A stretch of 64,000 nucleotides of DNA. It comes from Thalia democratica (Eukaryota). Positions 8,953 through 52,465 of this stretch are shown piece by piece. Both the position numbers and the translations under genes were made by a program. How positions within the stretch are numbered: position 1 is the stretch's first letter; each line of letters opens with the position of its first letter. Location: positions 31,000,001 to 31,064,000 of the forward strand of contig OZ241832.1 in the NCBI GenBank assembly GCA_965202585.1, in the 5' to 3' direction. Under the pieces are notes generated by a model, which was not told where the DNA came from, did no database searches, and saw nothing but the letters and a program-made list of their open reading frames with translations.

Positions 8953-9589
8953 TATTTAGTTTGTTGCAAATATTAGCTTAATAGACAATATACTGTTGAT
9001 ACATACTGAAGCTACTTACACTTAATTAAAATTTTTATTTGTTCTGTACTTTGTTAAACATTTTCTAATAGTTTTGTTGTGACTTATAATTTGTTTTACC
9101 CTCTTATTTCTTTAAATATCAATTTTTTTGTAGAACTATATGTTAACTACATTATTAAAGACGAAAAAATGATATAAAAATGTAATTTTAGGCTACTTGG
9201 CATAAGAATAAGGAAATAAATTAATAATGCTAGTTAGCAGTCTAAAATGTTTAAGATAAAATAAAAAATGATTTAGTATTAATTTTAAGTGTTATAATAA
9301 AATCTAATTCAAAATGTTTTATTTACAGTAAAAATTTTTTGAATAATATTTCAAGTTTTCAAAAGATAAAAAGGGAACTTGTTTACTAAGATATACACTC
9401 GAAAAATGTTTATTTTTTCCTTGTTATATATCTTAAGTTTATTTTTTTGTAAGATTTAAATTCAAAAAAAAAATTGTTGTGTTAATACATAATTTTATAT
9501 TTAAAGAATAAAAACTGTTTCTTTATTTTTTTCATAAAATAAGGGATTATATTGATAAAAAATTCCATAAGGTGGGACTAAAATGTAAA

Positions 9590-9740
9590 CAACAAAGGGT
9601 ATTGTCCCAATTTTAATTTTCAAACTAATTATGGAACTGACAAAATATAAGTCCCAAAAGTAACAATATAACTGAAAAAACTTAGTCCACAGTCACAATA
9701 GAACAGACAAAATTTAAGTCCAAAAAACTAACAAAAGTAT
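9590..9740. repeat. Degenerate ~33-bp tandem repeats (aactgacaaaa.ttaagtcc), probably an old TIR-element fragment; copies at about 30170-30290 and 44850-44960
   Basis: Three periods are visible: aactgacaaaatataagtccc / aactgaaaaaacttagtcca / aacagacaaaatttaagtcca. Confidence 0.55.
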
Positions 9741-10011
9741 TGAAAATGTGTGAGTACGACAAAGTTACAAAAAATGGTGACCAATTTTAAGTTACAGTAA
9801 CTCATGTTAAACTTATTTAAGACTCTTGAATATTTATATAACTAAAAAATAGACAATACTTGTAAGAAATTAAGACAGTAAAGACCAGTAAAATGCTGAA
9901 ATTTTTAGAAATTTGTACTATAAGAGTTTTCATAGGCATGATAATTGAATGAGATTTGTGATTGAAAAAATTGTTTCAATCATAATGTTAATGATTTTTG
10001 TCTAGTTATTG

Positions 10012-10467
10012 CAGGGGTGCCACACACTAAGGAAACTCCGGTAATTCAGGGAAACTCAGGGAAGGTTCAAGTTTAAAAAAATCTCAAGGAAAATCAGGGA
10101 ATTATGATTTTTTTTTTTACTCAGAAAAAACTCAGGGAAGTTTTGATTTTTTCTAAAAATTTAAGTTAAATTTTAAAACAATCTCAGGGAAAATTCTTTT
10201 CTAGATCTAGAGTGAGATTTAGTTAATTCAGTTAGTTTCAATATTTTGTTCAAAAAAATTAGTTTCATTTATTTTTGTGTTTATTTAGAAACTTTTATCC
10301 TTTTGTCTAGATCTTCAATATTCTTTAAAAAAACATTGTAATTTTTTAATAAACAGTAAAATTTTTAAGGAGAAAAAACTCAGGGAAACTTAGGTAAGTT
10401 TAGGGTTGATGAGGGTAGTTTTTGGTCACTTAGGGAAGATTTTTTGACTCAAAGAGTGGCAACTCTG
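10012..10467. mobile_element. Non-autonomous TIR element (MITE family 2) with 5-bp TSD
   Basis: caggggtgcca...tggcaactctg with internal (ct)cagggaa repeats, flanked by tattg on both sides. Confidence 0.85.
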
Positions 10468-10828
10468 TATTGACAATTTATGCAAATTAAATTTTCTTAA
10501 ACAGCTTTTGGATAACTTTGAGTACTATTAGTTTTCTAAATGTGAAGGCTTTAAAACCATTTGTTGAATATATTTAATTTCCTATCACTTTGTATTTAAA
10601 TTTTTTCTATTTTATTAGTTTTAAGACTAGTTTAATGTTTTGTATGTTATATAATTTAAAGATTTTTTCTGCTGTAAGTTTAAAAAATTAAGATAAGCTG
10701 CACTGTTTTGCATTAAAAATTACTTTGCCTCACTAATGTCATAGCTAAAAGTAAAAGTAGAGAGAATCTTTGAAAATGGCAGGAAGAGTAAATGTATTGG
10801 AATATCAGTTTTTTTGCTGTATCATTTA

Positions 10829-11214
10829 CGAGGTTGCCATTTACCTTAATTCTACGAAAAACCTGAAATTTGATAATTTAGACAAAAAAAACTTGAAAAC
10901 CCCGGAATTTTGAACAAAAACCACTAAAAAAACCTGGAGTTTTAACAATTTTCACATGCTCAGTGATAAAATTTCGGTTGGACTCAAAAAATCTATTATT
11001 TAAATAAAATTTTTTTGTTACCATCAAAAGTTTTTTTAAATACATTTATAAAATAGCTTTACAGTATCTTTTCAATGTCTTTATACTATTTAACACATTT
11101 TCTTACCTTAAACTTATCTTTAAACTACAAATAGATTTGAAAATGAGTACTTTTAAAATCCATGAAGAAATTTTGAAAACCTGGAAAAATGTTTGAAAAC
11201 GACTGGCAACTCTG
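10829..11214. mobile_element. MITE family 1 element with 6-bp TSD
   Basis: cgaggttgcca...tggcaactctg, internal acctggaaaaa repeats like 8535-8952, flanked by cattta on both sides. Confidence 0.85.
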
Positions 11215-11649
11215 CATTTATTTGAACATCAAAAACTATTAAAAAAGGCAACTAGTAACAAACAGTAATAAACAGTAAATATACTGTTTATTAAACATCT
11301 TTTTTTTAAACAACTCTAACAATTATAATAGATATTTTGATTTTAATTACAAGTAGTTAATTATTAATTTAATATATATTCTTATAGTATATTCCTGTTA
11401 GATTTTATTTTAGTGTAAACATTTTGACCACACTAAAGTATTTTCCAAAGCATAATGTTCTTTGATAATAAGTGTTTGATATTTTGTTTAGAATAAAATA
11501 TAACCACTTTAAGTTATTTCTAGTTTTTATTAATAGTATGGTATACCTTAACAACTATTTCTTATAAATAAAATTTAAATTTAATTATAGTTTAGTGTGG
11601 TTTTACAATACACTATAAGTTTTCAATATATTTTTTATTAGTTTTATTT

Positions 11650-11660
11650 TTTACAGGTTA
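11650..11660 (+). promoter_or_regulatory. Splice (or trans-splice) acceptor about 27-29 nt upstream of the small-ORF ATG
   Basis: Pyrimidine tract + AG|GT conserved in all four copies: ttttacag|gttat (about 11658 and 32203), ttttaaag|gttat (about 17054), ttttccag|gctat (about 46951). Confidence 0.6.
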
Positions 11661-11685
11661 TTTAAACATTTATAAAAGATAAACT

Positions 11686-11868
11686 ATGTCAACACACCAT
11701 AGTCAATTTGAAAATACTACAAAGAAAATAAAACTAGATGGAGTTGATGAAAATGTAAGTAGCATTGCAGAATACAAAAGGCTTGCTATTCTGAAGTATT
11801 GCAAGGAAAATGGGGTTAAAAAAAATCAGTTAGATGTATTATCCATTTCAAAAGAATTTTATAAATAA
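11686..11868 (+). CDS. Conserved small ORF upstream of Kelch (60 aa); either a micro-protein or the first coding exon of the Kelch gene
   Basis: Four paralogs keep the frame and the core VSSIAEYKR.AIL.YC.ENG..K.QL..L.IS, with many synonymous differences. No family recognised. Confidence 0.7.
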   Translation: MSTHHSQFENTTKKIKLDGVDENVSSIAEYKRLAILKYCKENGVKKNQLDVLSISKEFYK

Positions 11869-12772
11869 GGTTTTTTTTGTTTTTATTTATATTGATAATA
11901 ATATTTATCTTTGAATTCTATGAAAGTTTTCTCTACGTTCGTGATATGATAAACTATAGTAGTACTCATTACTAGCTATTTTATGCACAAATCTTTCTTA
12001 TTTTTATTCAATGTGTCTTAGAAAACAAAGGTAACTCATAAACCTTAGTTTAATAAACTTAAATGTTATTTTTATTTTTATTTATGAATTTAACCGTATG
12101 AGGTAAATAGTTAAACTATGATGCTTAAATTTAAAACAACGGCAAGTCATCAATCAATGAAGCTTATATCTTATAAATTAAAGGGCTGTTAATCATAATT
12201 TAATCTAAGGAATAAAACTTTGTTGTTATTTAAAAATGTGATATGGAAATTTTATGTGTTATTGAAACATTCCTAGTCTGCTTTAGAGTAATACGTTCAA
12301 TTGAATTAGTAGTATTTTAATAGTAATTTCGCGCATTGAGTGCTTAATTCTTAAGCCTTCTCCTGAATTCATCTAACTTATTATCACTAAACTTAATTCT
12401 ACTTAATATATGTGAAACTTAAAAAAGTTAGTTTATTTTAATTGACAAAGCAGCTTATCTATTATTAGAACAAAACTGCGAAAATGAATACAAAAAAGTA
12501 ATTCAAATTTTCTGCAAACTAATAAAATCTTATTTAGTGTTTTTATTCAGAATCTTATTAAAAGTTTTATAAACAGAACTTTAACATATATTGTTTAAAT
12601 TTCATAATTTGAATTGAAAACATTCATCTAGCGCCTCAGATGGTAATTTTAAAAACATCAAAATGTATATAGCTTGTTACAATAAAATAAAAATATTTTT
12701 TTTAGAATCAGTTTGTTTTTTCTGTTTAGAGCGTTTGATTTGTTATGTAACCAATAACAAAACTATTTAGGT

Positions 12773-14179
12773 ATGAAGAACCGAAAAATGACTGAAATAA
12801 TAACAGCTACAAGATTTAACAAACTTTCCCTAAACGAAAATGCAGTTAGTACAATTTCTGCAGTCTTAGAAGAAAAATTACAAATCAAAAATGCTGCTTC
12901 TGTTTACCAGTTTGTTAATCTGTTCAATTTATCTAGGCTCAAAAATTCAACCCTTAGATATATAGAACGTTGTTTTACAATTGTAAGTGATAATGAAAGC
13001 TTTTCAGAACTAGAATATAAGTTTATTTCTAAAATACTTGCAAGTTCTGAACTTCTAATTACTTCAGAAATTGAAGTACTTAAGGTAGTTGTAAGATGGC
13101 TAAACCACGACATTGAAAAACGTAGCAAGTACGCTGAAAATCTTTTATTGAAAGTTCGTCTTCATTTGCTTTCAAATGAAACTTTAAAACATCTTTTGAA
13201 TAGTTCAACATATTTAAAAAAAGGTGATTGTTTTGTAAAAACTTTAAATGAAATGCTAGACTGCAGAGAAAAAAAAATATTTGAAACTCCGAGTATTTAT
13301 CATGCAAGTAGGTATTGTAACCAAAAGTGTTTTAGATTAATGGTTTTAGGGGGCTATAATTTAGAAACAGCAATAAATTGTCGCAATGTAAGTTGTTTTG
13401 ATGTTGATAAGGTAGAAGTTGTAGAAGCTTATCCATCAATGATAACGGAACGCACTTTTCTAAAAGTAGTTTATTTAAAAGGTGAAATTTATGTATTTGG
13501 TGGTTATAATAAAAATAGTGATTGGATAAAGTCTGTAGATAAATATTCACTTACTTCTAAAACATGGAGTCAGGTAGCTGATATGAATGATTATCGTAAA
13601 TTTTTTTGTGTATGTGCATTCATAGATAAAATATATATGTTTGGAGGTAAAAAAGATGGAGCCAGAACTAATTCTTCTTTACAATTTGATGCAAGTGATA
13701 GCGGTTGTTGGAAAGAAGTTGCTACAATGAATGGGTCAAGATCATGTGCAGCTTGTGCAATTTTTGAAGAAAGAATTGTAGTTTCCGGTGGATTTAGTGA
13801 TAATGGAAATTTTTTAAACTCTGTTGAATCATACGATGTTCTACCAAATAAATGGTCAACAATGCCAAATATGAACTCCAGTAAATATGACCACAGTTTA
13901 GCTGTTGTTAAGAACAAGTTGTTTGTAATTTCAAAGAGAGAAGACAACAGTGAAGTTTTTGACAACATTTGTAAAAAGTTTATCACTATTAAATCACCAG
14001 GGTTTGACACGTTTTCTGATATAGGAGCTTATTCTATTCAAAAGAAAATTTTTGCCTTTCGAGACAAATCTTCAAAATTAATTTTTTATGATACTAACGA
14101 AAGTGAATGGTTGGAAGAATCTTGTGAAATAACAAAAAACCTTCGACGGTTTTCTAGCGTGAAAATACCTTGTTTATAA
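12773..14179 (+). CDS. Kelch-like protein copy 2 (BACK + six Kelch blades), 468 aa, intact
   Basis: Uninterrupted ORF with the same domain signatures as copy 1. Confidence 0.92.
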   Translation: MKNRKMTEIITATRFNKLSLNENAVSTISAVLEEKLQIKNAASVYQFVNLFNLSRLKNSTLRYIERCFTIVSDNESFSELEYKFISKILASSELLITSEIEVLKVVVRWLNHDIEKRSKYAENLLLKVRLHLLSNETLKHLLNSSTYLKKGDCFVKTLNEMLDCREKKIFETPSIYHASRYCNQKCFRLMVLGGYNLETAINCRNVSCFDVDKVEVVEAYPSMITERTFLKVVYLKGEIYVFGGYNKNSDWIKSVDKYSLTSKTWSQVADMNDYRKFFCVCAFIDKIYMFGGKKDGARTNSSLQFDASDSGCWKEVATMNGSRSCAACAIFEERIVVSGGFSDNGNFLNSVESYDVLPNKWSTMPNMNSSKYDHSLAVVKNKLFVISKREDNSEVFDNICKKFITIKSPGFDTFSDIGAYSIQKKIFAFRDKSSKLIFYDTNESEWLEESCEITKNLRRFSSVKIPCL

Positions 14180-17083: not shown

Positions 17084-17224
17084 ATGTCAACACAACAACA
17101 TGTAAGCAGTATTGCAGAATACAAAAGATGTGCTATTTTGAATTACTGCAAGGAAAATGGTATTAAAAAACATCAGCTACATGAATTGACGATTTCAAAT
17201 ATCCATAATAATTTAAGTATGTAA
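17084..17224 (+). CDS. Small-ORF paralog, 46 aa (not in the ORF track)
   Basis: My translation: MSTQQHVSSIAEYKRCAILNYCKENGIKKHQLHELTISNIHNNLSM*. It has an in-frame 51-nt (17-codon) deletion relative to the 60-aa copies and ends at a donor-like a|gtatgt (GT at 17217). Confidence 0.7.
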   Translation: MSTQQHVSSIAEYKRCAILNYCKENGIKKHQLHELTISNIHNNLSM

Positions 17225-17996: not shown

Positions 17997-19412
17997 ATGA
18001 ATAACGGGAAAATGATTGACAGAATTGCGGATACAAGATTTTTACATTTGATACAAAAAAAAAACTCTCAACGAAAAAGCAGTTAGTACAATTTGTAGAA
18101 TTTTAAATGAAAAAATAAAGATTAAAAATGCTGCTTCCGTTTACCAGTTTGTAAATCTGTTCAATTTATCGAGCCTCCAAAGTTCAACCCTTAGCTATAT
18201 AGAACGATGTTTTACAATTGTGAGAAATATTAAAAGATTTTTAGAACTAGAATATGACTCTATTTCTAAAATACTTAGAAGTTCTGAACTTTTAATTACT
18301 TCGGAAATTGAAGTATTTAAAGTAGTTTATAGATGGTTGAACCACAACATTGAAGAACGTAGCAAGTATGCTGAAGATCTTTTATTAAAAGTCCGTCTTC
18401 ATTTACTTTCAACAGAAACTATAAGACATCTTTTGAAAAATTCAACATTTCTTATAAAAGATGATGGTTGTGTGAAACTTATAAATAAAATTCTAGACTG
18501 CAGAGTAAACCGTTTTTATAAATCTTCAAATAATTGTCATACAAGTAGGTATTGTAACCAAAAATATTTTAACTTATTGTTTTGTGGGGGTTTTAACTCT
18601 CAAACATACATGACTTGTAACAATGTAAGTTGCATTGATGTATATAACGTGGGAGATGTAGAAGCTTATCCACCAATGAAAACGGAACGTGATAATCTAA
18701 GAGTAGTTTATGTAAAAGGTAGTATTTATGTTTTTGGTGGTTTTGATAATAATGGCAACTGGATAAAGTCTGTAGATAAATATTGACTTACTTCTAAAAT
18801 ATGGAGTCAGGTAGCTGAAATGAATGACGATCGTACAAATTTTTGTGTATGTGCATTCATAAATGAATTTATTATTATTGGAGGTAACAGAGGTGGCGTT
18901 ACAACTAGTTCTTGTTTAAATTTAATAAAAGTGATTACATTTGGAAAAAAGTCGACAAAATGAAAGAGGCAAGGTCAAGTGCAGCTTGTGCGGTTTTTGA
19001 AGAAAGAATTGTAGTTTCTGGTGGTAAGATTGATAATGTAAATGTTTTAAATTCTGTTGAATCATACGATGTTCTACCAAATAAATGGTCAACAATGCCA
19101 AATATGAACTCTGGTAAATTTAGACAGAGTTTAGTTGTTGTTAAAAACAAGTTGTATGTAATTCCAAGGAGAGGAGACAGTTGTGAAGTTTATGACAACA
19201 TTTGTAAAAAGTTTATTACTATTAAATCACCACAATTTAACAGGGGTTCTACCATTAGTGGTTTTTCTATAGAAAACAAAGTTTTTGCTACTCATGACAA
19301 CATGTCGAAAATAATTACTTACGAAACAAACGAAAATGAATGGTCGGTAGAATATTGTGAAGTCATAAAAAACCTTCGAAATTTTTCAAGCGTTAAAGTA
19401 CCTTGTTTATAA
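17997..19412 (+). pseudogene. Kelch-like copy 3, pseudogene
   Basis: Full-length homology, with a frameshift around the A-run at about 18055-18065, a nonsense TGA at 18784-18786 (TCA in paralogs) and a -1 frameshift at about 18915. Confidence 0.9.
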
Positions 19413-29496: not shown

Positions 29497-30554
29497 TATT
29501 TAGTTTGTTGCAAATATTAACTTAATAGACAATATAATGTTGATACATACTGAAGCTACTTACTTTATATTGAAATTTTTATTTGTTTTGTACTTTGTTA
29601 GACATTTTCTAATAGTTTTGTTGTGACTTATAATTTGTTTTACCCTCTTATTTCTTTAAATATAAATTTTTTTATAGAACTTTATGTTAACTACATTATT
29701 AAAGACAAAAAAATGATATAAAAATGTAATTTTAGGCTACTTGGCATAAGAATAAGGAAATAAATTATTAATGCTAGTTAGCAGTCTAAAATGTTTAAGA
29801 TAAAATAAAAATGATTTAGTATTAATTTTAAGTGTTATAATAAAATCGAATTCAAAATGTTTTATTTACAGTAAAAATTTTTTGAATAATATTTCAAGTT
29901 TTCAAAGATAAAAAAGGAGCTTGTTTACTAAGATATACACTCGAAAAATGTTTATTTTTTCCTTGTTATATATCTTAAGTTTAATTTTTTGTAAGATTTA
30001 AATTCCAAAAAAAAAATTGTTGTGTTAATACATAATTTTAAATTTAAAGAATAAAAACTGTTTCTTTATTTTTTTCATAAAATAAGGGATTATATTGATA
30101 AAAAATTCCATAAGGTGGGACTAAAATGTAAACAACAAAGGGTATTGTCCCAATTTTAATTTTCAAACTAATTATGGAACTGACAAAATATAAGTCCCCA
30201 AAGTAACAATATAACTGAAAAAACTTAGTCCACAGTCACAATAGAACAGACAAAGTTTAAGTCCAAAAAACTAACAAAAGTATTGAAAATGTGTGAGTAC
30301 GACAAAGTTACAAAAAATGGTGACCAATTTTAAGTCACAGTAACTCATGTTAAACTTATTTAAGACTCTTGAATATTTATAGAACTAAAAAATAGACAGT
30401 ACTTGTAAGAAATTAAGACAGTAAAGACCAGTAAAATGCTGAAATTTTTAGAAATTTGTACCATAGGAGTTTTCATAGGCATGATAATTGAATGAGATTT
30501 GTGATTGAAAAAGTTGTTTCAATCATAATGTTAATGATTTTTGTCTAGTTATTG

Positions 30555-31010
30555 CAGGGTTGCCACACACTAATGAAACTCCGGTAATTCAGGGAAACTC
30601 AGGGAAGGTTCAAGTTTAAAAAAATCTCAAGGAAAATCAGGGAATTATGATTTTTTTTTTTACTCAGAAAAAACTCAGGGAAGTTTTGATTTTTTCTAAA
30701 AATTTAAGTTAAATTTTAAAACAATCTTAGGGAAAATTCTTTTCTAGATCTAGAGTGAGATTTAGTTAATTCAGTTAGTTTCAATATTTTGTTCAAAAAA
30801 GTTAGTTTCATTTATTTTTGTGTTTATTTAGAAACTTTTATCCTTTTGTCTAGATCTCCAATATTCTTTAAAAAAACATTGTAATTTTATAATAAGAAGT
30901 AAAATTTTTAAGGAGAAAAAACTCAGGGAAACTTAGGTAAGTTTAGGGTTAATGAGGGTAGTTTTTGGTCACTTAGGGAAGATTTTTTGACTCAAAGAGT
31001 GGCAACTCTG
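30555..31010. mobile_element. MITE family 2 (duplicate of 10012-10467)
   Basis: cagggttgcca...tggcaactctg with tattg TSD. Confidence 0.85.
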
Positions 31011-31371
31011 TATTGACAATTTATGCATATTAAATTTTCTTAAACAGCTTTTAGATATCTTTGAGTACTATTAGTTTTCTAAATGTGAAGGCTTTAAAAC
31101 CATTTGTTGAATATATTTAATTTCCTATCACTTTGTATTTAAATTTTTTCTATTTTATTAGTTTTAAGACTAGTTTAATGTTTTGTATGTTATATAATTT
31201 AAAGATTTTTTCTGCTGTAAGTTTAAAAAATTAAGATAAGCTGCACTGTTTTGCATTAAAAATTACTTTGCCTCACTAATGTCATAGCTAAAAGTAAAAG
31301 TAGAGAGAATCTTTAAAAATGGCAGGAAGAGTAAATGTATTGGATTATCAGTTTTCTTGCTGTATCATTTA

Positions 31372-31761
31372 CGAGGTTGCCACATTACCTTGAATCTACG
31401 AAAAACCTGAAATTTGATAATTTAGACAAAAAAAACTTGAAAACCCCGGAATTTTGAACAAAAACCACTAAAAAAACCTGGAGTTTTAACAATTTTCACA
31501 TGCTCAGTGATAAAATTTCGGTTGGACTCAAAAAATCTATTATTTAAATAAAATTTTTTTGTTATCATCAAAAGTTTTTTTTTTAAATACATTTATAAAA
31601 TAGCTTTACAGTATCTTTTCAATGTCTTTATACTATTTAACACATTTTCTTACCTTAAACCTATCTTTAAACTACAAATAGACTTGAAAATGAGTACTTT
31701 TAAAATCCATGAAGAAATTTTGAAAACCTGGAAAAATGTTTGAAAACGACTGGCAACTCTG
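31372..31761. mobile_element. MITE family 1 (duplicate of 10829-11214)
   Basis: cgaggttgcca...tggcaactctg with cattta TSD. Confidence 0.85.
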
Positions 31762-32232
31762 CATTTATTTGAACATCAAAAACTATTAAAAAAGGCAACT
31801 AGTAACAAACAGTAATAAACAGTAAATATACTGTTTATTAAACATCTTTTTTTTAAACAACTCTAACAATTATAATAGATATTTTGATTTTAATTACAAG
31901 TAGTTAATTATTAATTTAATATATATTCTTATAGTATATTCCTGTTAGATTTTATTTTAGTGTAAACATTTTGACCACACTAAAGTATTTTCCAAAGCAT
32001 AATGTTCTTTGATAATAAGTGTTTGATATTTTGTTTAAAATAAAATATAACCACTTTAAGTTATTTCTAGTTTTTATTAATAGTATGGTATACCTTAACA
32101 ACTATTTCTTATAAATAAAATTTAAATTTAATTATAGTTTAGTGTGGTTTTACAATACACTATAAGTTTTCAATATATTTTTTATTAGTTTTATTTTTTA
32201 CAGGTTATTTAAACATTTATAAAAGATAAACT

Positions 32233-32415
32233 ATGTCAACACAACATAGTCAATTTGAAAATACTACAAAGAAAATAAAACTAGATCGAGTTGATGAAAA
32301 TGTAAGTAGCATTGCAGAATACAAAAGGCTTGCTATTCTGAAGTATTGCAAGGAAAATGGGGTTAAAAAAAATCAGTTAGATGTATTATCCATTTCAAAA
32401 GAATTTTATAAATAA
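32233..32415 (+). CDS. Small-ORF paralog, 60 aa (near-identical to 11686-11868)
   Basis: Two amino-acid differences from the 11686 copy (H4Q, G19R). Confidence 0.65.
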   Translation: MSTQHSQFENTTKKIKLDRVDENVSSIAEYKRLAILKYCKENGVKKNQLDVLSISKEFYK

Positions 32416-33317
32416 GGTTTTTTTTGTTTTTATTTATATTGATAATAATATTTATCTTTGAATTCTATGAAAGTTTTCTCTACGTTCGTGATATGATAAA
32501 CTATAGTAGTACTCATTACTAGCTATTTTATGCACAAATCTTTCTTATTTTTATTCAATGTGTCTTAGAAAACAAAGGTAACTCATAAACCTTAGTTTAA
32601 TAAACTTAAATGTTATTTTTATTTTTATTTATGAATTTAACCGTATGAGGTAAATAGTTAAACTATGATGCTTAAATTTAAAACAACGGCAAGTCATCAA
32701 TCAATGAAGCTTATATCTTATAAATTAAAGGGCTGTTAATCATAATTTAATCTAAGGAATAAAACTTTGTTGTTATTTAAAAATGTCATATGGAAATTTT
32801 ATGTGTTATTGAAACATTCCTAGTCTGCTTTAGAGTAATACGTTCAATTGAATTAGTAGTATTTCAATAGTAATTTCGCGCATTGAGTGCTTAATTCTTA
32901 AGCCTTCTCCTGAATTCATCTAACTTATTATCACTAAACTTAATTCTACTTAATATATGTGATATTTATAAAAGTTAGTTTATTTTAATTGACAAAGCAG
33001 CTTATCTATCAGTAGAACAAAACTGCGAAAATGAATACAAAAAAGTAATCCAAATTTTCTACAAGCTGACAAAATCTTATTTAGTGTTTTTATTTAGAAT
33101 CTTATTGAGTGTTATAAACAAAACCTTAAAATATATTGTTTAAATTTTATAATTTGAATGGAAAACATTCATCTAGTGCCTCAGGCTATAATTTTAAAAA
33201 CAACAAAATGTATATAGCTTGTTACAATAAAATAAAAATATTATTCTAGAATCAGTTTTTTTTTTTCTGTTTATAGCGTTTGATTTGTTATGTAACCACT
33301 AACAAAACTATTTAGGT

Positions 33318-34741
33318 ATGAATAACCGAAAAATGACTGAAATAATAACAGCTACAAGATTTAACAAACTTTCCCTCAACGAAAATGCAGTTAGTACAAT
33401 TTCTGCAGTCTTAGAAGAAAAATTACAAATAAAAAATGCTGCTTCTGTTTACCAGTTTGTTAATCTGTTCAATTTATCTAGGCTCAAAAATTCAACCCTT
33501 AGATACATAGAACGTTGTTTTACAATTGTAAGTGATAATGAAAGCTTTTCAGAACTAGAATATAAGTTTATTTCTAAAATACTTGAAAGTTCTGAACTTC
33601 TAATTACTTCAGAAGTTGAAGTATTTAAAGTAGTTGATAAATGGCTAAACCACGACATTTAAGAACGTAGCAAGTACGCTGAAAATCTTTTATTAAAAGT
33701 TTGTCTTCATTTGCTTTCAAATGAAACTTTAAAACATCTTTTGAATAGTTCAACATATTTAAAAAAAGGTGATTGTTTTGTAAAAACTTTAAATGAAATG
33801 CTAGACTGCAGAGAAAAAAAAATATTTGAAACTCCGAGTATTTATCATACAAGTAGGTATTGTAACCAAAATTAGTTTAAATTACTGGTTTTAGGGGGCT
33901 ATAATTCAGAAACAGCAATGAAATGTAGCAATGTAAGTTGCATTGATGTTTGTAAAATAAGAGATGTAGAACCTTATCCACCAATGAAAACGGGAAGTTG
34001 GTATCAAAAAGCAATTTATTTAAAAGGTGAAATTTTTGTATTTGGTGGTTGGAATAATCGTGGCAAATGGATAAAGTCTGTAGATAAATATTCACTAACT
34101 TCTAAAACATGGAGTCAGGTAGCTGAAATGTATGACCATCGTAAATTTTTTTGTGTATGTGCATTCATAGATAAAATATATATGTTTGGAGGTAAAAAAA
34201 TGGAGGTGAAACTAATTCTTCTTTACAATTTGATGCAAGTGATAGCGGTTGTTGGAAAGAAGTTGCTACAATGAATTGGTCAAGATCAAGTGCAGCTTGT
34301 GCAGTTTTTGAAGAAAGAATTGTAGTTTCTGGTGGATGGAGTGATAATGGAAATGTTTTAAACTCTGTTGAGTCATACGATGTTCTACCAAATAAATGGT
34401 CAACAATGCCAAATATGAACTCCGGTAAATATGACCACAGTTTAGCTGTTGTTAAGATCAAGTTGTTTGTAATTTCAAGGAGAGAAGACAACAGTGAAGT
34501 TTTTGACAACATTTGTAAAAAGTTTATCACTATTAAATCACCAGAGTTTGACAGGTTTTCTGTTATAAAAGCTTATTCTATTAAAAACAAAATTTTTGTC
34601 TTTCAAGACATCTCGTCAAAATTAATTTCTTATGATACTAGCGAAAGTGAATGGTTGGAAGAATCTTGTGAAACAACAAAAAACCTTCGACGATTTTCTA
34701 GCGTGAAAATACCTTTTTATAAAGAACATTTAGCATATTAG
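33318..34741 (+). pseudogene. Kelch-like copy 4, pseudogene
   Basis: GAA>TAA at 33660-33662, an in-frame TAG at about 33873, a -1 frameshift at about 34195-34201 (aaaaaaatgg vs aaaaaagatgg in copy 2) and a frameshift just before the normal stop. Confidence 0.92.
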
Positions 34742-46980: not shown

Positions 46981-47271
46981 ATGTCAACACAACATAGTCA
47001 AACTAAAAATACTACAAAGAGAGTACAACTAGATGGAGTTGATGAAAATGTAAGCAGTATTGCAGAATACAAAAGGCTTGCTATTCTGAAGTACTGCAAT
47101 GAAAATGGAATTGAAAAAAATCAGCTAGATGAATTATCCATTTCAAATGAGCTTCATAAATTTGGTTTATTTTGTTTTTTTATTACATTGATAATAACAT
47201 TTATCTTTGAATTCTGTAAAAGTTTCCTCTATGTTCGTGATATAACAAACTACGGTAGTACTCATTATTAG
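46981..47271 (+). CDS. Small-ORF paralog (96 aa if unspliced; about 61 codons if it is exon 1 of Kelch copy 5)
   Basis: Same conserved core. It lacks the TAA found in the 11686/32233 copies and has a phase-1 GT at 47165 at the position homologous to the 17217 donor. Confidence 0.72.
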   Translation: MSTQHSQTKNTTKRVQLDGVDENVSSIAEYKRLAILKYCNENGIEKNQLDELSISNELHKFGLFCFFITLIITFIFEFCKSFLYVRDITNYGSTHY

Positions 47272-48067
47272 CTACCTTACGCACAAATTTTCTTTTAAGA
47301 AAACAAAGGTAACTCATAAACCTTAGTTTGCTAACCTTAAATTCTTTTTTTTTTCTATTTATGAATTTAACTGTATGAGGTTTATAGTTAAACTATCAAG
47401 CTTAAATTTTAAACAACGGTAAGTCATCAACTAAGAAGCTAATCTCATATAAACAATAAGCTGTTAATCATAATTTAATCTAAGGAAAAAGCTTTGTTGT
47501 CAGTTTAGAATATAATTTGAAAAATTTATGTTTTATTAAATAATTCCCAGCCTGGTTTAGAGCAGGGTTTCCCAAAGTGGGCGATATCGCCCCCCTGGGG
47601 GCGATTTTAGTAATTTGGGGGGCGATAATTAGTAAGGGGGCGAAAGGGTGGGCGATAACTAGTAAGGGGGCGAAAAGGGGGCGATTTTGAAATTTTGGGC
47701 TGTCATAAGATTTTTACTTTTTTTCTTGCTATTTTACTAATTTTAGCTTGCTATTAATTATTTGACCCTAAGGTAAAACTTAAACAAAAAAGATAATTTT
47801 ATTTATGTAAAAAATAGAAAAAAAATCAAGTGCTTATGACTCCTACTTTCAAGTAAATACTATACTTTCATTCATATATTTCCTTATTTAAAAATTACAT
47901 AGATCATAGACGATTGGAATCCCTCTCACTATTTTATAACCTGACAGATATGTTTTTTGGGATCATAAATGGTAAAAATTTATGTTATTTATTTTTAACT
48001 ATAACCTTAATATATTTCCAGTTGTTTTTTGAAAAGTCACTAAGTTAGAATAAGAAATAAAACTACA

Positions 48068-48576: not shown

Positions 48577-51061
48577 TATTTTAGACATTAGTAGCAGACT
48601 TTATTTTATGAAAGTTTTTTAATTTTATTTGATCTTTTAAAATAATTCTTATTTAACCTGGTTTGTATTGTATTTAAGTAGTCTTTTTATAATAACAACT
48701 GTATTAAGCTATTTATTCTAAAACAGGTTTGCATAATGCCTAATAAATATTAATTTACGGTAAACTTCCTCTTGAGTTCGAACTTTTTACCCAAAAAAAT
48801 TGCAAATTTATATTTTCTTAAATTTAACTAAAGTAAATCCTATTACTAACTAAATATTAATAAAACAAATTATATATAATATTTAATAGCTTATATAGAT
48901 TTTTTTCTTTTAATTAAAGTTTGTTTTATGTTTTAGTTGATTTCATGTTTTTTCATAACATTATTGCATATAACACATTGAAATTTGTCATTTTGTAAAA
49001 GAAACGTGGTAATAATTTTTCAAGTTTGCAGTTTTTGATTTTTTTTTTAAGTCCGAACTCAAGAGGAAGTCTACTATAATTATTAAATGGTTTATGTTTT
49101 AAAGTTGTTAATAGTTTTATTTCGACCTGGTTAATTTTGTAGTTCATATTCGTCGTTTTACATTACACTAAAAGTTTTTATAGCATAGTGACCAAAATAT
49201 TTGTTTGAAAGACCTTTATTTGACAGGTTTTTGTTATTACTTGTTTAATCTGTATATAACTTATATCACTATATAACTATTATCTGATTGTAAAATTTTG
49301 ATAACCATTAAAATTTTTATTTCTAAAAATAATTTTTTGGTGTTAAAAGAGTATAAATTTGAGGCCTCTATTTGAAATGACAAATATGTTTTTGTTATGA
49401 CAACTTTTACGTTTTCATTTAAAAGTTTCTTAAACTCAATTTTTTTTTCTAACTTGATTTACTATTGTTAAAAATATTTTATCATATAAGGAGTTTTAAA
49501 CTGTTCATACAAATATTTTTTGTTTTATCTTAATTCAATATATATATTAGCAATTAGAATATACTTAGTTTATTTAAATATTTCAACACTAGCTTTTAGT
49601 TTTTCACTATTTTCCTCTGTTAAACTATCATAGGCTAATAGCTAGAAAAAACAACTTTTTAAACAGTATAAAATAAGCCATCAAAAAGACTGCTACAATT
49701 ACAAAACTAAATTTTAACCTAGTTAAAAGTCTTTTTTAATTGATTACTTTCTGTTCACAGAATTAACTGTCAAACATTGGATTTTTTTTTGAATTTAAAT
49801 AAAGAAAAAAAAAAAGTTAGAATTAAGGTTTAGTTCCCTAAAGATTATTCCCAGTCAAATACTATTTCATGGTATTCTACTACGAAGAAAATAGTTTAAA
49901 AAGTTTAAAATTAAAGTTTTAACTTTACAACTAACTTGCTTACAATATATCATAGCATTGAAATTATAAATTTACTGCATTAACTTGATGAAACCACTTT
50001 TCATGTGAGATAATCAACCAGTCAGTCAAAGTTCCTCAAACTAGATCTAAAATTATTTTTCAATTTTTATTTTATTATGTGTAAAATAAACTGTTTATTT
50101 TTTTATGGTTTTTTAATCTCTGGTATAGTTATTTTAGAATATGCCTATTTATAAAGTAATTTAAGTATTTTGTGCGGCTTAAATAAGTTACTTAGTATTA
50201 AATTCTAAATGTCCAAAATTCGTTATATGAGATATTATTATAATGTCAGGCTTCATTTAAGATTTCAGATAGGTAACGTACTACTCAGATCTAGTCGCAG
50301 ATCCAGTCGATTTTCGACCCGCTAAGTAAATTGAAAACTACTTGTGTAAATAAAATTTAGTTCTTTGATACTTACCATTTTGAAATACACTTTCATTTCG
50401 TTTTCAGTTCACAATAGCATTTCCTAGATCACAATAATACTAAATAATTTTATTACAATTTTGCTCGAGTTTTTTAATTTTCTTATTTGTTATTTTCTAA
50501 ATCATGCAGCCCGCAATTACATTTTTTAACGAGTTGAAACTAGAAAGGATTTGTTAGTAAATATGAGTTGCTCACTACAAAAGTTGTCCACCACTGACCT
50601 AAAAGTTTTATTAGTTTCAAAACAGTTCATATTTAAACAGGATTGATTACAGATTACACGAGGCTTTTTAATATTAAAGTATTTTATACACTTTACTGGG
50701 CTTCTAAGAAAATAACTGTGAATTATTTTCTAAAGCCCTGTAAATTACTTTGAACACAAAAGTGCGTGCATAGGAAGTACTAGACTAAATTACATTTGAA
50801 CACAATTTTTTTTTATCTCAAAAGCTTGTACTAAAAAGAAAAACTACATTGTAAAATCGTGGGGGTGATTTTTTTTCAAATTACTGAAAAGGGGGCGATT
50901 TAGTAAATGAGTTTGGGAAACCCTGATCTAGCGCCTCAGATGGTAATTTAAAAAAATGTATATGGTTTAATTAAATTAAAAACATTTTTTTTTTAGAACC
51001 AGTTTTTTTTCTGTTTAAAGCGTTTAATTTTTCTAGTAACCACTAACAAAACTATTTAGGT

Positions 51062-52465
51062 ATGCAGAACCGAATATTAAGTATGAACGTTACAGCTACA
51101 AGATTAAACAAACTTTCCCTCAATGAAAATGCAAGTAGTACAACTTGTACAATTTTAAAAGAAAAATTACAGTGTAAAAATGCTGCTTCTGTTTACCAGT
51201 TTGTGAATCTGTTCAATCTATCTAGCCTCAAAAATTCAACCTTTAGCTATATACAACGTTGTTTTACAATTGTTAGTGATAAAAAAGGCTTTTTAGATAT
51301 AGATTATAATTTTATTTCTAAAATACTTGCAAGTTCTCAACTTCTAATTACTTCAGAAATTGAAGTACTTAAGGTAGTTGTAAGATGGCTAAACCACAAC
51401 ATTGAAGAACGTAGCAAGTACGCTGAAGATCTTTTATTAAAAGTTCGTCTTCATTTGCTTTCAACAGAAACTATAAGACATCTTTTAAATGATTCAAAAT
51501 TATTTGAAGAAGATGATGGTTGTTTTAAAATATTAAAGAAAATTCTAGATTGCAAAAAAATAAAAAATCATAAACCTTCAAGTATTTATCTCACAAGTAG
51601 GTATTGCAAGCAAAAATATTTTAAAATACTGGTTTTAGGGGGTTATGATTTAAAAACAAAAATGATTTGTAGCAACGTAAGTAGTTTTAATGTTAAAAAA
51701 GTAGATGTAGAGACTTATCCACCAATGAAAACGGAACGTGATCATTCAAAAGTAGTTTATTTAAAAGGTGATGTTTTTGTTATTGGTGGTCGGAATAATA
51801 GTGGTTGGATAAAGTCTGTTGATAAATATTCACTTACTTCTAAAGCATGGAGTCAGGTAGCTGAAATGAATGATGTTCTTAAATATTTTTGTGTTTGTGC
51901 ATTTATGGACAAAATATTTATTATTGGAGGTAACAAACATAGAGTAGAAACCAATTCTTGTTTACAATTTGATACAAGTGATTGCAGTTGGAAAGAATTT
52001 GCTAGAATGAACGAAGCAAGATCAAGTGCAGCTTGTGCAGTTTTTGAAGAAAGAATCGTAGTTTGCGGTGGATACAATGGCAACCATAGAAACTTCTCAA
52101 ATTCTGTTGAATCATATGATGTTCTTCCAAATAAATGGTCAACAATGCCAAATATGAACTCTGGTAAATTTAGACACAGTTTAGTTGTTGTTAAAAACAA
52201 ATTATTTGTAATTTCACAGACAAAAGACGGTTGTGAAGTTTTTGACAACACTTGTAAAAAGTTTATCACTATAAAACCACCAGAATTTTACTACTCGTTT
52301 AATTGTATAAAATCTTTTTCTATTGAAAACAAAATTTTTATCTTACCAGAAAACTATTTGAAAATTATTTCTTTCGATCCTAACGAAATTGAATGGTCGG
52401 AAGAATCTTGTGAAGTAACAAGTAAACTTGTATATTTTTCTAGCGTGAAAATACCTTGTTTGTAA
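51062..52465 (+). CDS. Kelch-like protein copy 5 (BACK + six Kelch blades), 467 aa, intact
   Basis: Uninterrupted ORF with the same domain signatures. It can be joined in frame to the 46981 ORF through 47165 GT...AG 51059. Confidence 0.92.
   Translation: MQNRILSMNVTATRLNKLSLNENASSTTCTILKEKLQCKNAASVYQFVNLFNLSSLKNSTFSYIQRCFTIVSDKKGFLDIDYNFISKILASSQLLITSEIEVLKVVVRWLNHNIEERSKYAEDLLLKVRLHLLSTETIRHLLNDSKLFEEDDGCFKILKKILDCKKIKNHKPSSIYLTSRYCKQKYFKILVLGGYDLKTKMICSNVSSFNVKKVDVETYPPMKTERDHSKVVYLKGDVFVIGGRNNSGWIKSVDKYSLTSKAWSQVAEMNDVLKYFCVCAFMDKIFIIGGNKHRVETNSCLQFDTSDCSWKEFARMNEARSSAACAVFEERIVVCGGYNGNHRNFSNSVESYDVLPNKWSTMPNMNSGKFRHSLVVVKNKLFVISQTKDGCEVFDNTCKKFITIKPPEFYYSFNCIKSFSIENKIFILPENYLKIISFDPNEIEWSEESCEVTSKLVYFSSVKIPCL

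Follow-up and report, generated by a model that had tools for sequence, protein, structure and literature searches.

The small open reading frame (ORF) that begins at position 11686 of the window is, judged by the way its codons have changed between copies, real and protein-coding, and the coding sequence of the adjacent BACK-Kelch gene probably begins with it: as a first coding exon it would give a protein that has no BTB domain an orphan N-terminal module. The window is the whole stretch of Thalia democratica DNA that was analysed, 64,000 nucleotides long (C8:31,000,001-31,064,000 of the 800-Mb assembly), with a G+C content of 25%. Translation would start at the ATG, at 11686 in the window copy, continue for 61 codons and end after the first base of a Gly codon (G/GT, the slash marking the exon boundary). 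A phase-1 intron of about 0.9 kb would then be removed and exon 1 joined to the AG/GT ATG that heads the Kelch exon, as far as the joint can be read from genomic sequence. The predicted product has about 530 amino acids and consists of the orphan N-terminal module, a BACK domain and a six-bladed Kelch propeller. Positioned at the usual place of BTB, the module may give localisation or partner binding to the substrate-recognition propeller.

Table 1. Features of the 11686 unit and of its sister copies, in window positions; splice sites and intron are predicted.
Feature	Position	Strand	Remarks
Acceptor-like AG (11655-11656) and 29-nt leader ahead of the ATG	11655-11685	+	
Coding part of putative exon 1 (the small ORF)	11686-11868	+	60 codons and a premature TAA (11866-11868); TTA (Leu) in sister copies
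Final exon base G, which opens the split Gly codon, and predicted donor GT, phase 1	11869-11871	+	
Predicted intron, 901 nt	11870-12770	+	Neutral divergence (p = 0.20), many indels
Predicted acceptor AG/GT	12769-12772	+	GT completes the split Gly codon; ATG at 12773
Exon 2, BACK and six-bladed Kelch propeller, intact	12771-14179	+	468 codons from the ATG at 12773
Short-type exon-1 copy without the 17 codons	17084-17218	+	Open to A/GT (split codon AGT, Ser)
Twin of the 11686 copy	32233-32415	+	Identical TAA
Intact exon-1 copy	46981-47166	+	61 codons, then G/GT
High-identity tract	9430-12425	+	98-99.4% identical to the unit 20.5 kb downstream (about 29960-32970)

Four copies of the ORF are present in the window, at 11686, 17084, 32233 and 46981, as found with a degenerate core pattern for which 0 matches are expected by chance. 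A tblastn search with a 62-residue consensus of the copies yields these four and no others. The 60-residue frame at 11686, from its ATG to its TAA, is as described in the first-pass annotation of this DNA. Codon-by-codon comparison of this copy with that at 17084 recovers exactly the eight synonymous changes listed there; in place of the about eight changed residues given with them, 10 replacements are counted in the aligned core, after which the 3' ends diverge. The sole large indel between the two copies measures 51 nt, or 17 codons, again as reported. It is a subfamily marker, and the same subfamily is also found in ocean metagenomes. The motif KKIKL had been ascribed to three copies and is found in two, the third copy having KRVQL and the fourth lacking the segment. 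The ORF had also been said to lie always 0.8-1 kb upstream of a Kelch frame, which is correct for three of the four window copies and incorrect for that at 46981, which lies 3.9 kb upstream. Most of the 33 units of the genome that have a Kelch exon inside the retrieved stretch carry it at 1047-1098 nt from the ATG; in the remaining ones the distance is 0.65, 0.9-1.0, 1.6, 3.2 or 4.1 kb.

The Kelch exon of the 17084 copy (about 17997-19412) is a pseudogene with two frameshifts and one stop, and that of the 32233 unit (33318-34741) is broken by two frameshifts and two stops. The 46981 unit has an intact exon 2 at 51060-52465, its intron having grown to 3,895 nt by an insertion. Repeated GGGGGCGA-like motifs occur within this intron at about 47650-47800 of the window, in otherwise 25% G+C sequence, and are part of the 3-kb insertion.

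Purifying selection on the ORF, which had been proposed from the comparison of two copies, is upheld by a codon model of 30 distinct sequences: omega is 0.34 and not near 1 (lnL -1395.4 against -1419.4 at omega = 1; 2ΔlnL 48). The Nei-Gojobori dN/dS is 0.41 for the ORF and 0.30 for its core, as compared to 0.66-0.77 in the two wrong frames, and the third codon position is the most variable. The core beyond codons 24-25 is the most constrained portion. Pairwise comparison of the 15 units in which the Kelch exon is intact gives a pS of 0.193 and a pN of 0.086, the divergence being 0.201 in the intron and 0.178 in the upstream block. Silent sites therefore diverge as non-coding DNA does, and replacement sites less than half as fast. 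Constraint is stronger in exon 1 than in the Kelch exon, in which omega is 0.66 and dN is higher, and the module would be the most constrained part of the gene. Gene conversion was considered as a reason for the 5' block being more alike between units than the Kelch exon; it is not needed, since the synonymous divergence of the two is similar (0.19 and 0.22).

The flanks accumulate frameshifts freely, as had been noted. Over 24 non-redundant copies, the 184-nt ORF has a single indel, as against 88 in the upstream flank (370 nt) and 70 in the downstream flank (first 300 nt). If homopolymer and other sites are treated separately, about 35-54 indels are predicted in the ORF from the flanks, where one is seen.

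The ORF does not hold up as a stand-alone gene, which is how it had first been presented: no stop codon is conserved, whether in the 41 copies from the genome or in the 39 relatives from metagenomes. In 35 of the 41 copies the frame stays open between the ATG and G/GT. Past the donor GT the translated sequence is T-rich and unconserved, and it runs for anything from 1 to about 75 codons before a stop, the place of which differs even between close copies. The GT itself is found in 36 of 36 units, preceded by G in 35 and by A in one. At the other end of the putative intron, the context ..TATTTAG/GT ATG is conserved before the Kelch ORF. Of 31 units, 30 have the acceptor AG and 30 have G as the next base, the one AG/GA copy still encoding Gly. 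In other Kelch subfamilies AG/G is readable as '..LG', '..SG' or '..KG' before the first conserved residue, where the ORF call extended upstream. Donor and acceptor are both in phase 1, the split codon is GGT, GGA or AGT, and the frames join; matching phase is expected by chance in one of three cases. The resulting junction reads through in 15 of the 16 units whose Kelch exon is intact. The intron would be 871-901 nt long in 11 of 15 such units, with variants of 1.44 kb (three units) and 3.9 kb (one unit), and in two further units the Kelch exon is situated about 3.2 kb from the ATG.

The splice signals are not canonical throughout. The donors GTTTGT, GTTTAT and GTTTTT are far from GTRAGT, a general consensus that is uncalibrated for this genome. 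A-rich sequence occupies the 16 nt ahead of the acceptor, and about 40 nt upstream there is a better pyrimidine tract that has an AG of its own; use of that AG would bring a stop in frame. A search of sequencing runs returned no RNA run containing the stretch, and the two DNA-contig runs that cover the intron are without the GT..AG joint. An internal GTAAGT at codons 24-25 was considered as a donor and rejected: its GT is missing from intact copies with I or L at that codon, its phase would not fit, and the core downstream of it is the most constrained. Likewise, a tail-anchored small membrane protein, with the hydrophobic read-through sequence as its anchor, is contradicted by the tails of copies L048, L049, L055 and L067, which have an intact Kelch exon and end after 1-8 residues, and by the unrelated tails of the metagenomic relatives.

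Upstream of the ATG, an acceptor-like AG precedes a 29-nt leader and is kept in 35 of 36 units. The block from -19 to +10 comprises the most conserved 30 nt of the unit (0.92). Ten of the 36 units, the 11686 unit, L034 and L055 among them, have in-frame stops in the leader, which is therefore non-coding. It is probably a 5'UTR, to which either a non-coding exon further upstream or a spliced leader, in trans, would be joined. The motif TATAAAAG is found at 11671-11678 of the window and in all units, 8-15 nt before the ATG and within the most conserved 30-nt block. As a TATA box it would imply a transcript start inside the ORF, and it is here read as part of the putative leader.

Exon 2 matches the Pfam families BACK (PF07707, 5.6e-21, residues 43-142) and Kelch_1 (3.8e-30), and its AF2 model has a pLDDT of 88.7. 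The propeller of the model can be superimposed on KLHL12 with a Z of 35.4 and an rmsd of 2.1 Å over 275 residues; KLHL12, KEAP1 and KLHL2 all give a Z of 34-35 with an rmsd of about 2 Å, and propellers fill the matches listed in a structure search with this model. BTB (PF00651) has no match at E ≤ 1 in the small ORF or the Kelch ORF, none among 47 module sequences, and none at E ≤ 10 in the first 60 residues of three exon-2 copies. A genome-wide BTB scan yielded 225 candidates, none of them in the units examined. The sole BTB match in the span of the cluster, at C8:31752792-31753049, is inside a separate open frame of 492 amino acids, which may represent a BTB-bearing relative among the BTB-less units.

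The Kelch exon belongs to a large family, with 6001 first-look candidates genome-wide when a 40%-identical metagenomic member is the query; most of the 86 candidates scored have open frames of 470-510 amino acids. Single-exon BACK-Kelch genes of this family are found genome-wide, for example at C1:114.5-116.0 Mb, at C5:19.3-19.7 Mb, and on C6 and C7. The first full codon of exon 2 is Met in about 75% of 62 family members, with varying neighbours, and K, N or I in the others; in L053 and L055 ATA replaces the ATG. Second exons with such heads are unable to start translation themselves. The conserved Met suggests that a module-less form starting there may also exist.

The module combines a basic patch and an acidic one with an amphipathic helix, whose motif is IAEYKRLAILKYCxENG. 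The first-pass annotation had recognised no family for the peptide, and none is found in Pfam, PDB sequences or the ESM Atlas. When a profile of 29 copies is run against 1.84 billion representative proteins, it recovers 39 short ORF calls of ocean-metagenome origin, the most distant about 35% identical. These relatives keep the layout of the module: a Met-Ser start, the basic patch and the helix IAE(Y/F)K..AILK(Y/F)C.EN, ending in ..K(L/I)G. Their conserved part ends in Gly or Ser (GGT/AGT) and is followed by unrelated residues. A cluster look-up gave only ENA and Logan contigs, and JGI metagenome scans gave nothing, or unrelated Kelch genes only. The module is seen in none of the 120 metagenomic Kelch homologues listed, and literature searches found no relevant paper. 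Modelled alone, the module gives a poor AF2 model (pLDDT 60.6) with one continuous helix at residues 27-42. Three other identities were considered and gained no profile support: an F-box, a homeodomain-like helix, and a remnant of BTB in exon 1 or in the first part of exon 2.

The genome contains about 80-110 copies of the ORF, nearly all within one cluster of 1.6 Mb. In a DNA search 40 copies were scored out of 92 candidates. A six-frame protein search gave 109 matches, about 80 of them at C8:30.48-32.09 Mb; only three of the 109 have a stop inside the core, and the longest open frame around the module is at most 136 amino acids. The cluster comprises at least 80 units, the Kelch exon being broken in about half of them. 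Apart from some exceptions, the minus strand holds the units up to about 30.9 Mb and the plus strand those beyond about 30.97 Mb; the array is roughly mirror-symmetric about a point just left of the window. A second group, at C8:57.5-58.03 Mb, consists of about 25 weak open-frame matches to the exon-1 peptide with 40-52% identity.

Identity between units is mosaic. The high-identity tract listed in Table 1 spans the upstream block, exon 1 and most of the intron, and the 11-kb duplicate around it is otherwise 92-96% identical. This pattern indicates a recent gene-conversion tract of 3 kb, carrying the TAA allele. The TAA is codon 61 of the 11686 copy, one codon before the donor, and is shared with the copy at 32233. 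From the comparison of copies, the 60-residue form seen in the window is thus a derived state, reached via TTA>TAA and present in two of 41 copies. In the 11686 unit the 60-residue peptide would be made alone, the stop being located 3 nt before the Kelch ATG in the spliced RNA. The intact Kelch ORF of this unit would be translatable only from its own ATG, giving at best a module-less Kelch protein.

Decay of the two exons was compared in the 31 units with a complete Kelch exon. In 16 units this exon is intact; the other 15 carry 36 frameshifts or stops, in 1.4 kb each. Scaled by length, 4.7 lesions are expected in exon 1 of the 15 broken units and five are seen, namely the TAA of the 32233 copy, frameshifts in L038 and L042, a stop in L061 and an ATG>ACG change in L063. 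Among the 16 intact units, only one has an exon-1 lesion, the TAA of the window copy at 11686. The difference between 5/15 and 1/16 is borderline in Fisher's test (p about 0.08, an estimate); a p of 0.037 is obtained with 6/15, a figure that counts the 17084 copy as lesioned, and this copy has been re-read as open. Exon 1 appears to be protected together with a live Kelch exon and to drift with a dead one, unlike a separate gene, which is supporting evidence rather than proof.

Other explanations of the ORF have to be weighed against these data. It might be a small-protein gene in its own right, perhaps as the upstream cistron in a tunicate operon, that encodes a peptide with a variable tail, the Kelch protein being made from its own ATG after spliced-leader trans-splicing at AG/GT. 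Tunicates use both operons and spliced-leader trans-splicing, and an acceptor positioned 2 nt before the ATG, as is the case here, is found in many of their trans-spliced genes. The prevalence of Met at the head of the Kelch exon among varying neighbours is in line with such an arrangement, as is the combination of a clean stop and an intact Kelch ORF in the 11686 unit. Furthermore, a product fusing the module to Kelch was found neither in the six-frame search of the genome nor in the profile search of 1.84 billion representative proteins. However, no stop is conserved, and the tails, mostly hydrophobic and unconserved, differ between near-identical copies. Two cistrons also leave unexplained why conservation ends at an invariant GT and why the phase of the acceptor matches. 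The lesion counts given above show exon 1 kept no better than neutral when the Kelch exon is dead, and the spacer, at about 0.9 kb, is long by the standard of tunicate operons. Taken together, these points make a separate gene unlikely.

It is quite improbable that exon 1 is coding and spliced to some other exon, or that the AG about 40 nt before the Kelch ATG is the one used, in which case the frame would end after about 14 more codons. The weak donor and the pyrimidine-rich tract that accompanies this AG in the 11686 copy are the points in favour of such splicing. The upstream AG is not conserved in place or phase, though, being missing from the 17084 copy and displaced by 2 nt in that at 32233, while the AG/G directly before the Kelch ORF is conserved across subfamilies; in the retrieved units, no further conserved ORF is found between the exons or within about 0.8 kb past the Kelch exon. 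A non-coding conserved element, such as a promoter, an enhancer or an RNA of the Kelch unit, with an open frame that is accidental, is very improbable indeed. It would account for the TATAAAAG motif before the ATG and for the modest contrast with the flanks: the whole block from -400 to +850 is 75-92% identical between units, and the ORF is thus only slightly more conserved than its surroundings. It does not agree with the rejection of neutrality by the codon model, with a third codon position that varies most, with an order-of-magnitude deficit of indels that is limited to the ORF, or with a peptide that is kept at 35-60% identity in the metagenomic relatives, and the ORF stretch has no match in Rfam.

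If the ORF is the first coding exon of the Kelch gene, single-exon ORF calls of the Kelch genes in the cluster miss about 60 N-terminal residues, as would those of the 120 listed metagenomic homologues, and the small 'orphan' ORF calls in ocean metagenomes would be fragments of such Kelch genes. It is conceivable, if doubtful, that the module is a new tunicate-specific N-terminal domain replacing BTB in one subfamily, and that the same acceptor serves either cis-splicing, which would give the form with the module, or spliced-leader trans-splicing, which would give a module-less form from the conserved Met. With such dual use of the acceptor, a single nonsense change would switch a copy from the long to the short form without killing the gene. 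Confirmation of the splice would establish a large tunicate-specific set of Kelch propellers with an unfamiliar N-terminal module in place of BTB, raising the question of how, or whether, these proteins couple to ubiquitin ligases.

The module can be compared to an ankyrin repeat, with one repeat of two ankyrin proteins sharing 20 core columns at 50% identity and the motif LAVVKYCHENG. Both proteins come up in the profile search by way of a stretch of 17-20 residues. The E-values of these proteins (9e-10 and 1e-5) are for the whole protein, summed over 6-7 repeats. The hhalign probability is 42%, however, no Pfam Ank match is found in 47 module sequences, and the AF2 model contains a single helix, not a helix-turn-helix. 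The likeness is a motif-level resemblance only. The 11686 and 32233 copies resemble upstream ORFs or micropeptide genes, in that their frames stop 3 nt before the main ATG and would act as an upstream ORF of 60 codons. This state is derived and rare (2/41); elsewhere the frame would run on into the main ORF.

A close parallel in architecture is with the KLHL/KBTBD family of BTB-BACK-Kelch adaptors of Cullin-3, in which BACK is likewise followed by a six-bladed propeller and whose length is similar to the approximately 530 residues of the predicted joined protein. Kelch-like proteins normally carry BTB ahead of BACK, and it is BTB that normally links them to Cullin-3. Here BTB goes undetected in exon 1, in the first 60 residues of exon 2 and near the units, and Cullin binding is therefore not implied; an orphan module of 61 residues stands in its place. 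Fast-evolving tandem families with lineage-specific exons are common. In the size of the cluster, the broken units, the mosaic identity and the conversion tract, the array is similar to the lineage-specific tandem expansions of Kelch and BTB-Kelch genes, which evolve by birth-and-death and gene conversion. It differs from them in its scale, which is unusual given the number of Kelch-exon candidates genome-wide (6001 at first look), and in that this subfamily has an exon-1 module of its own.
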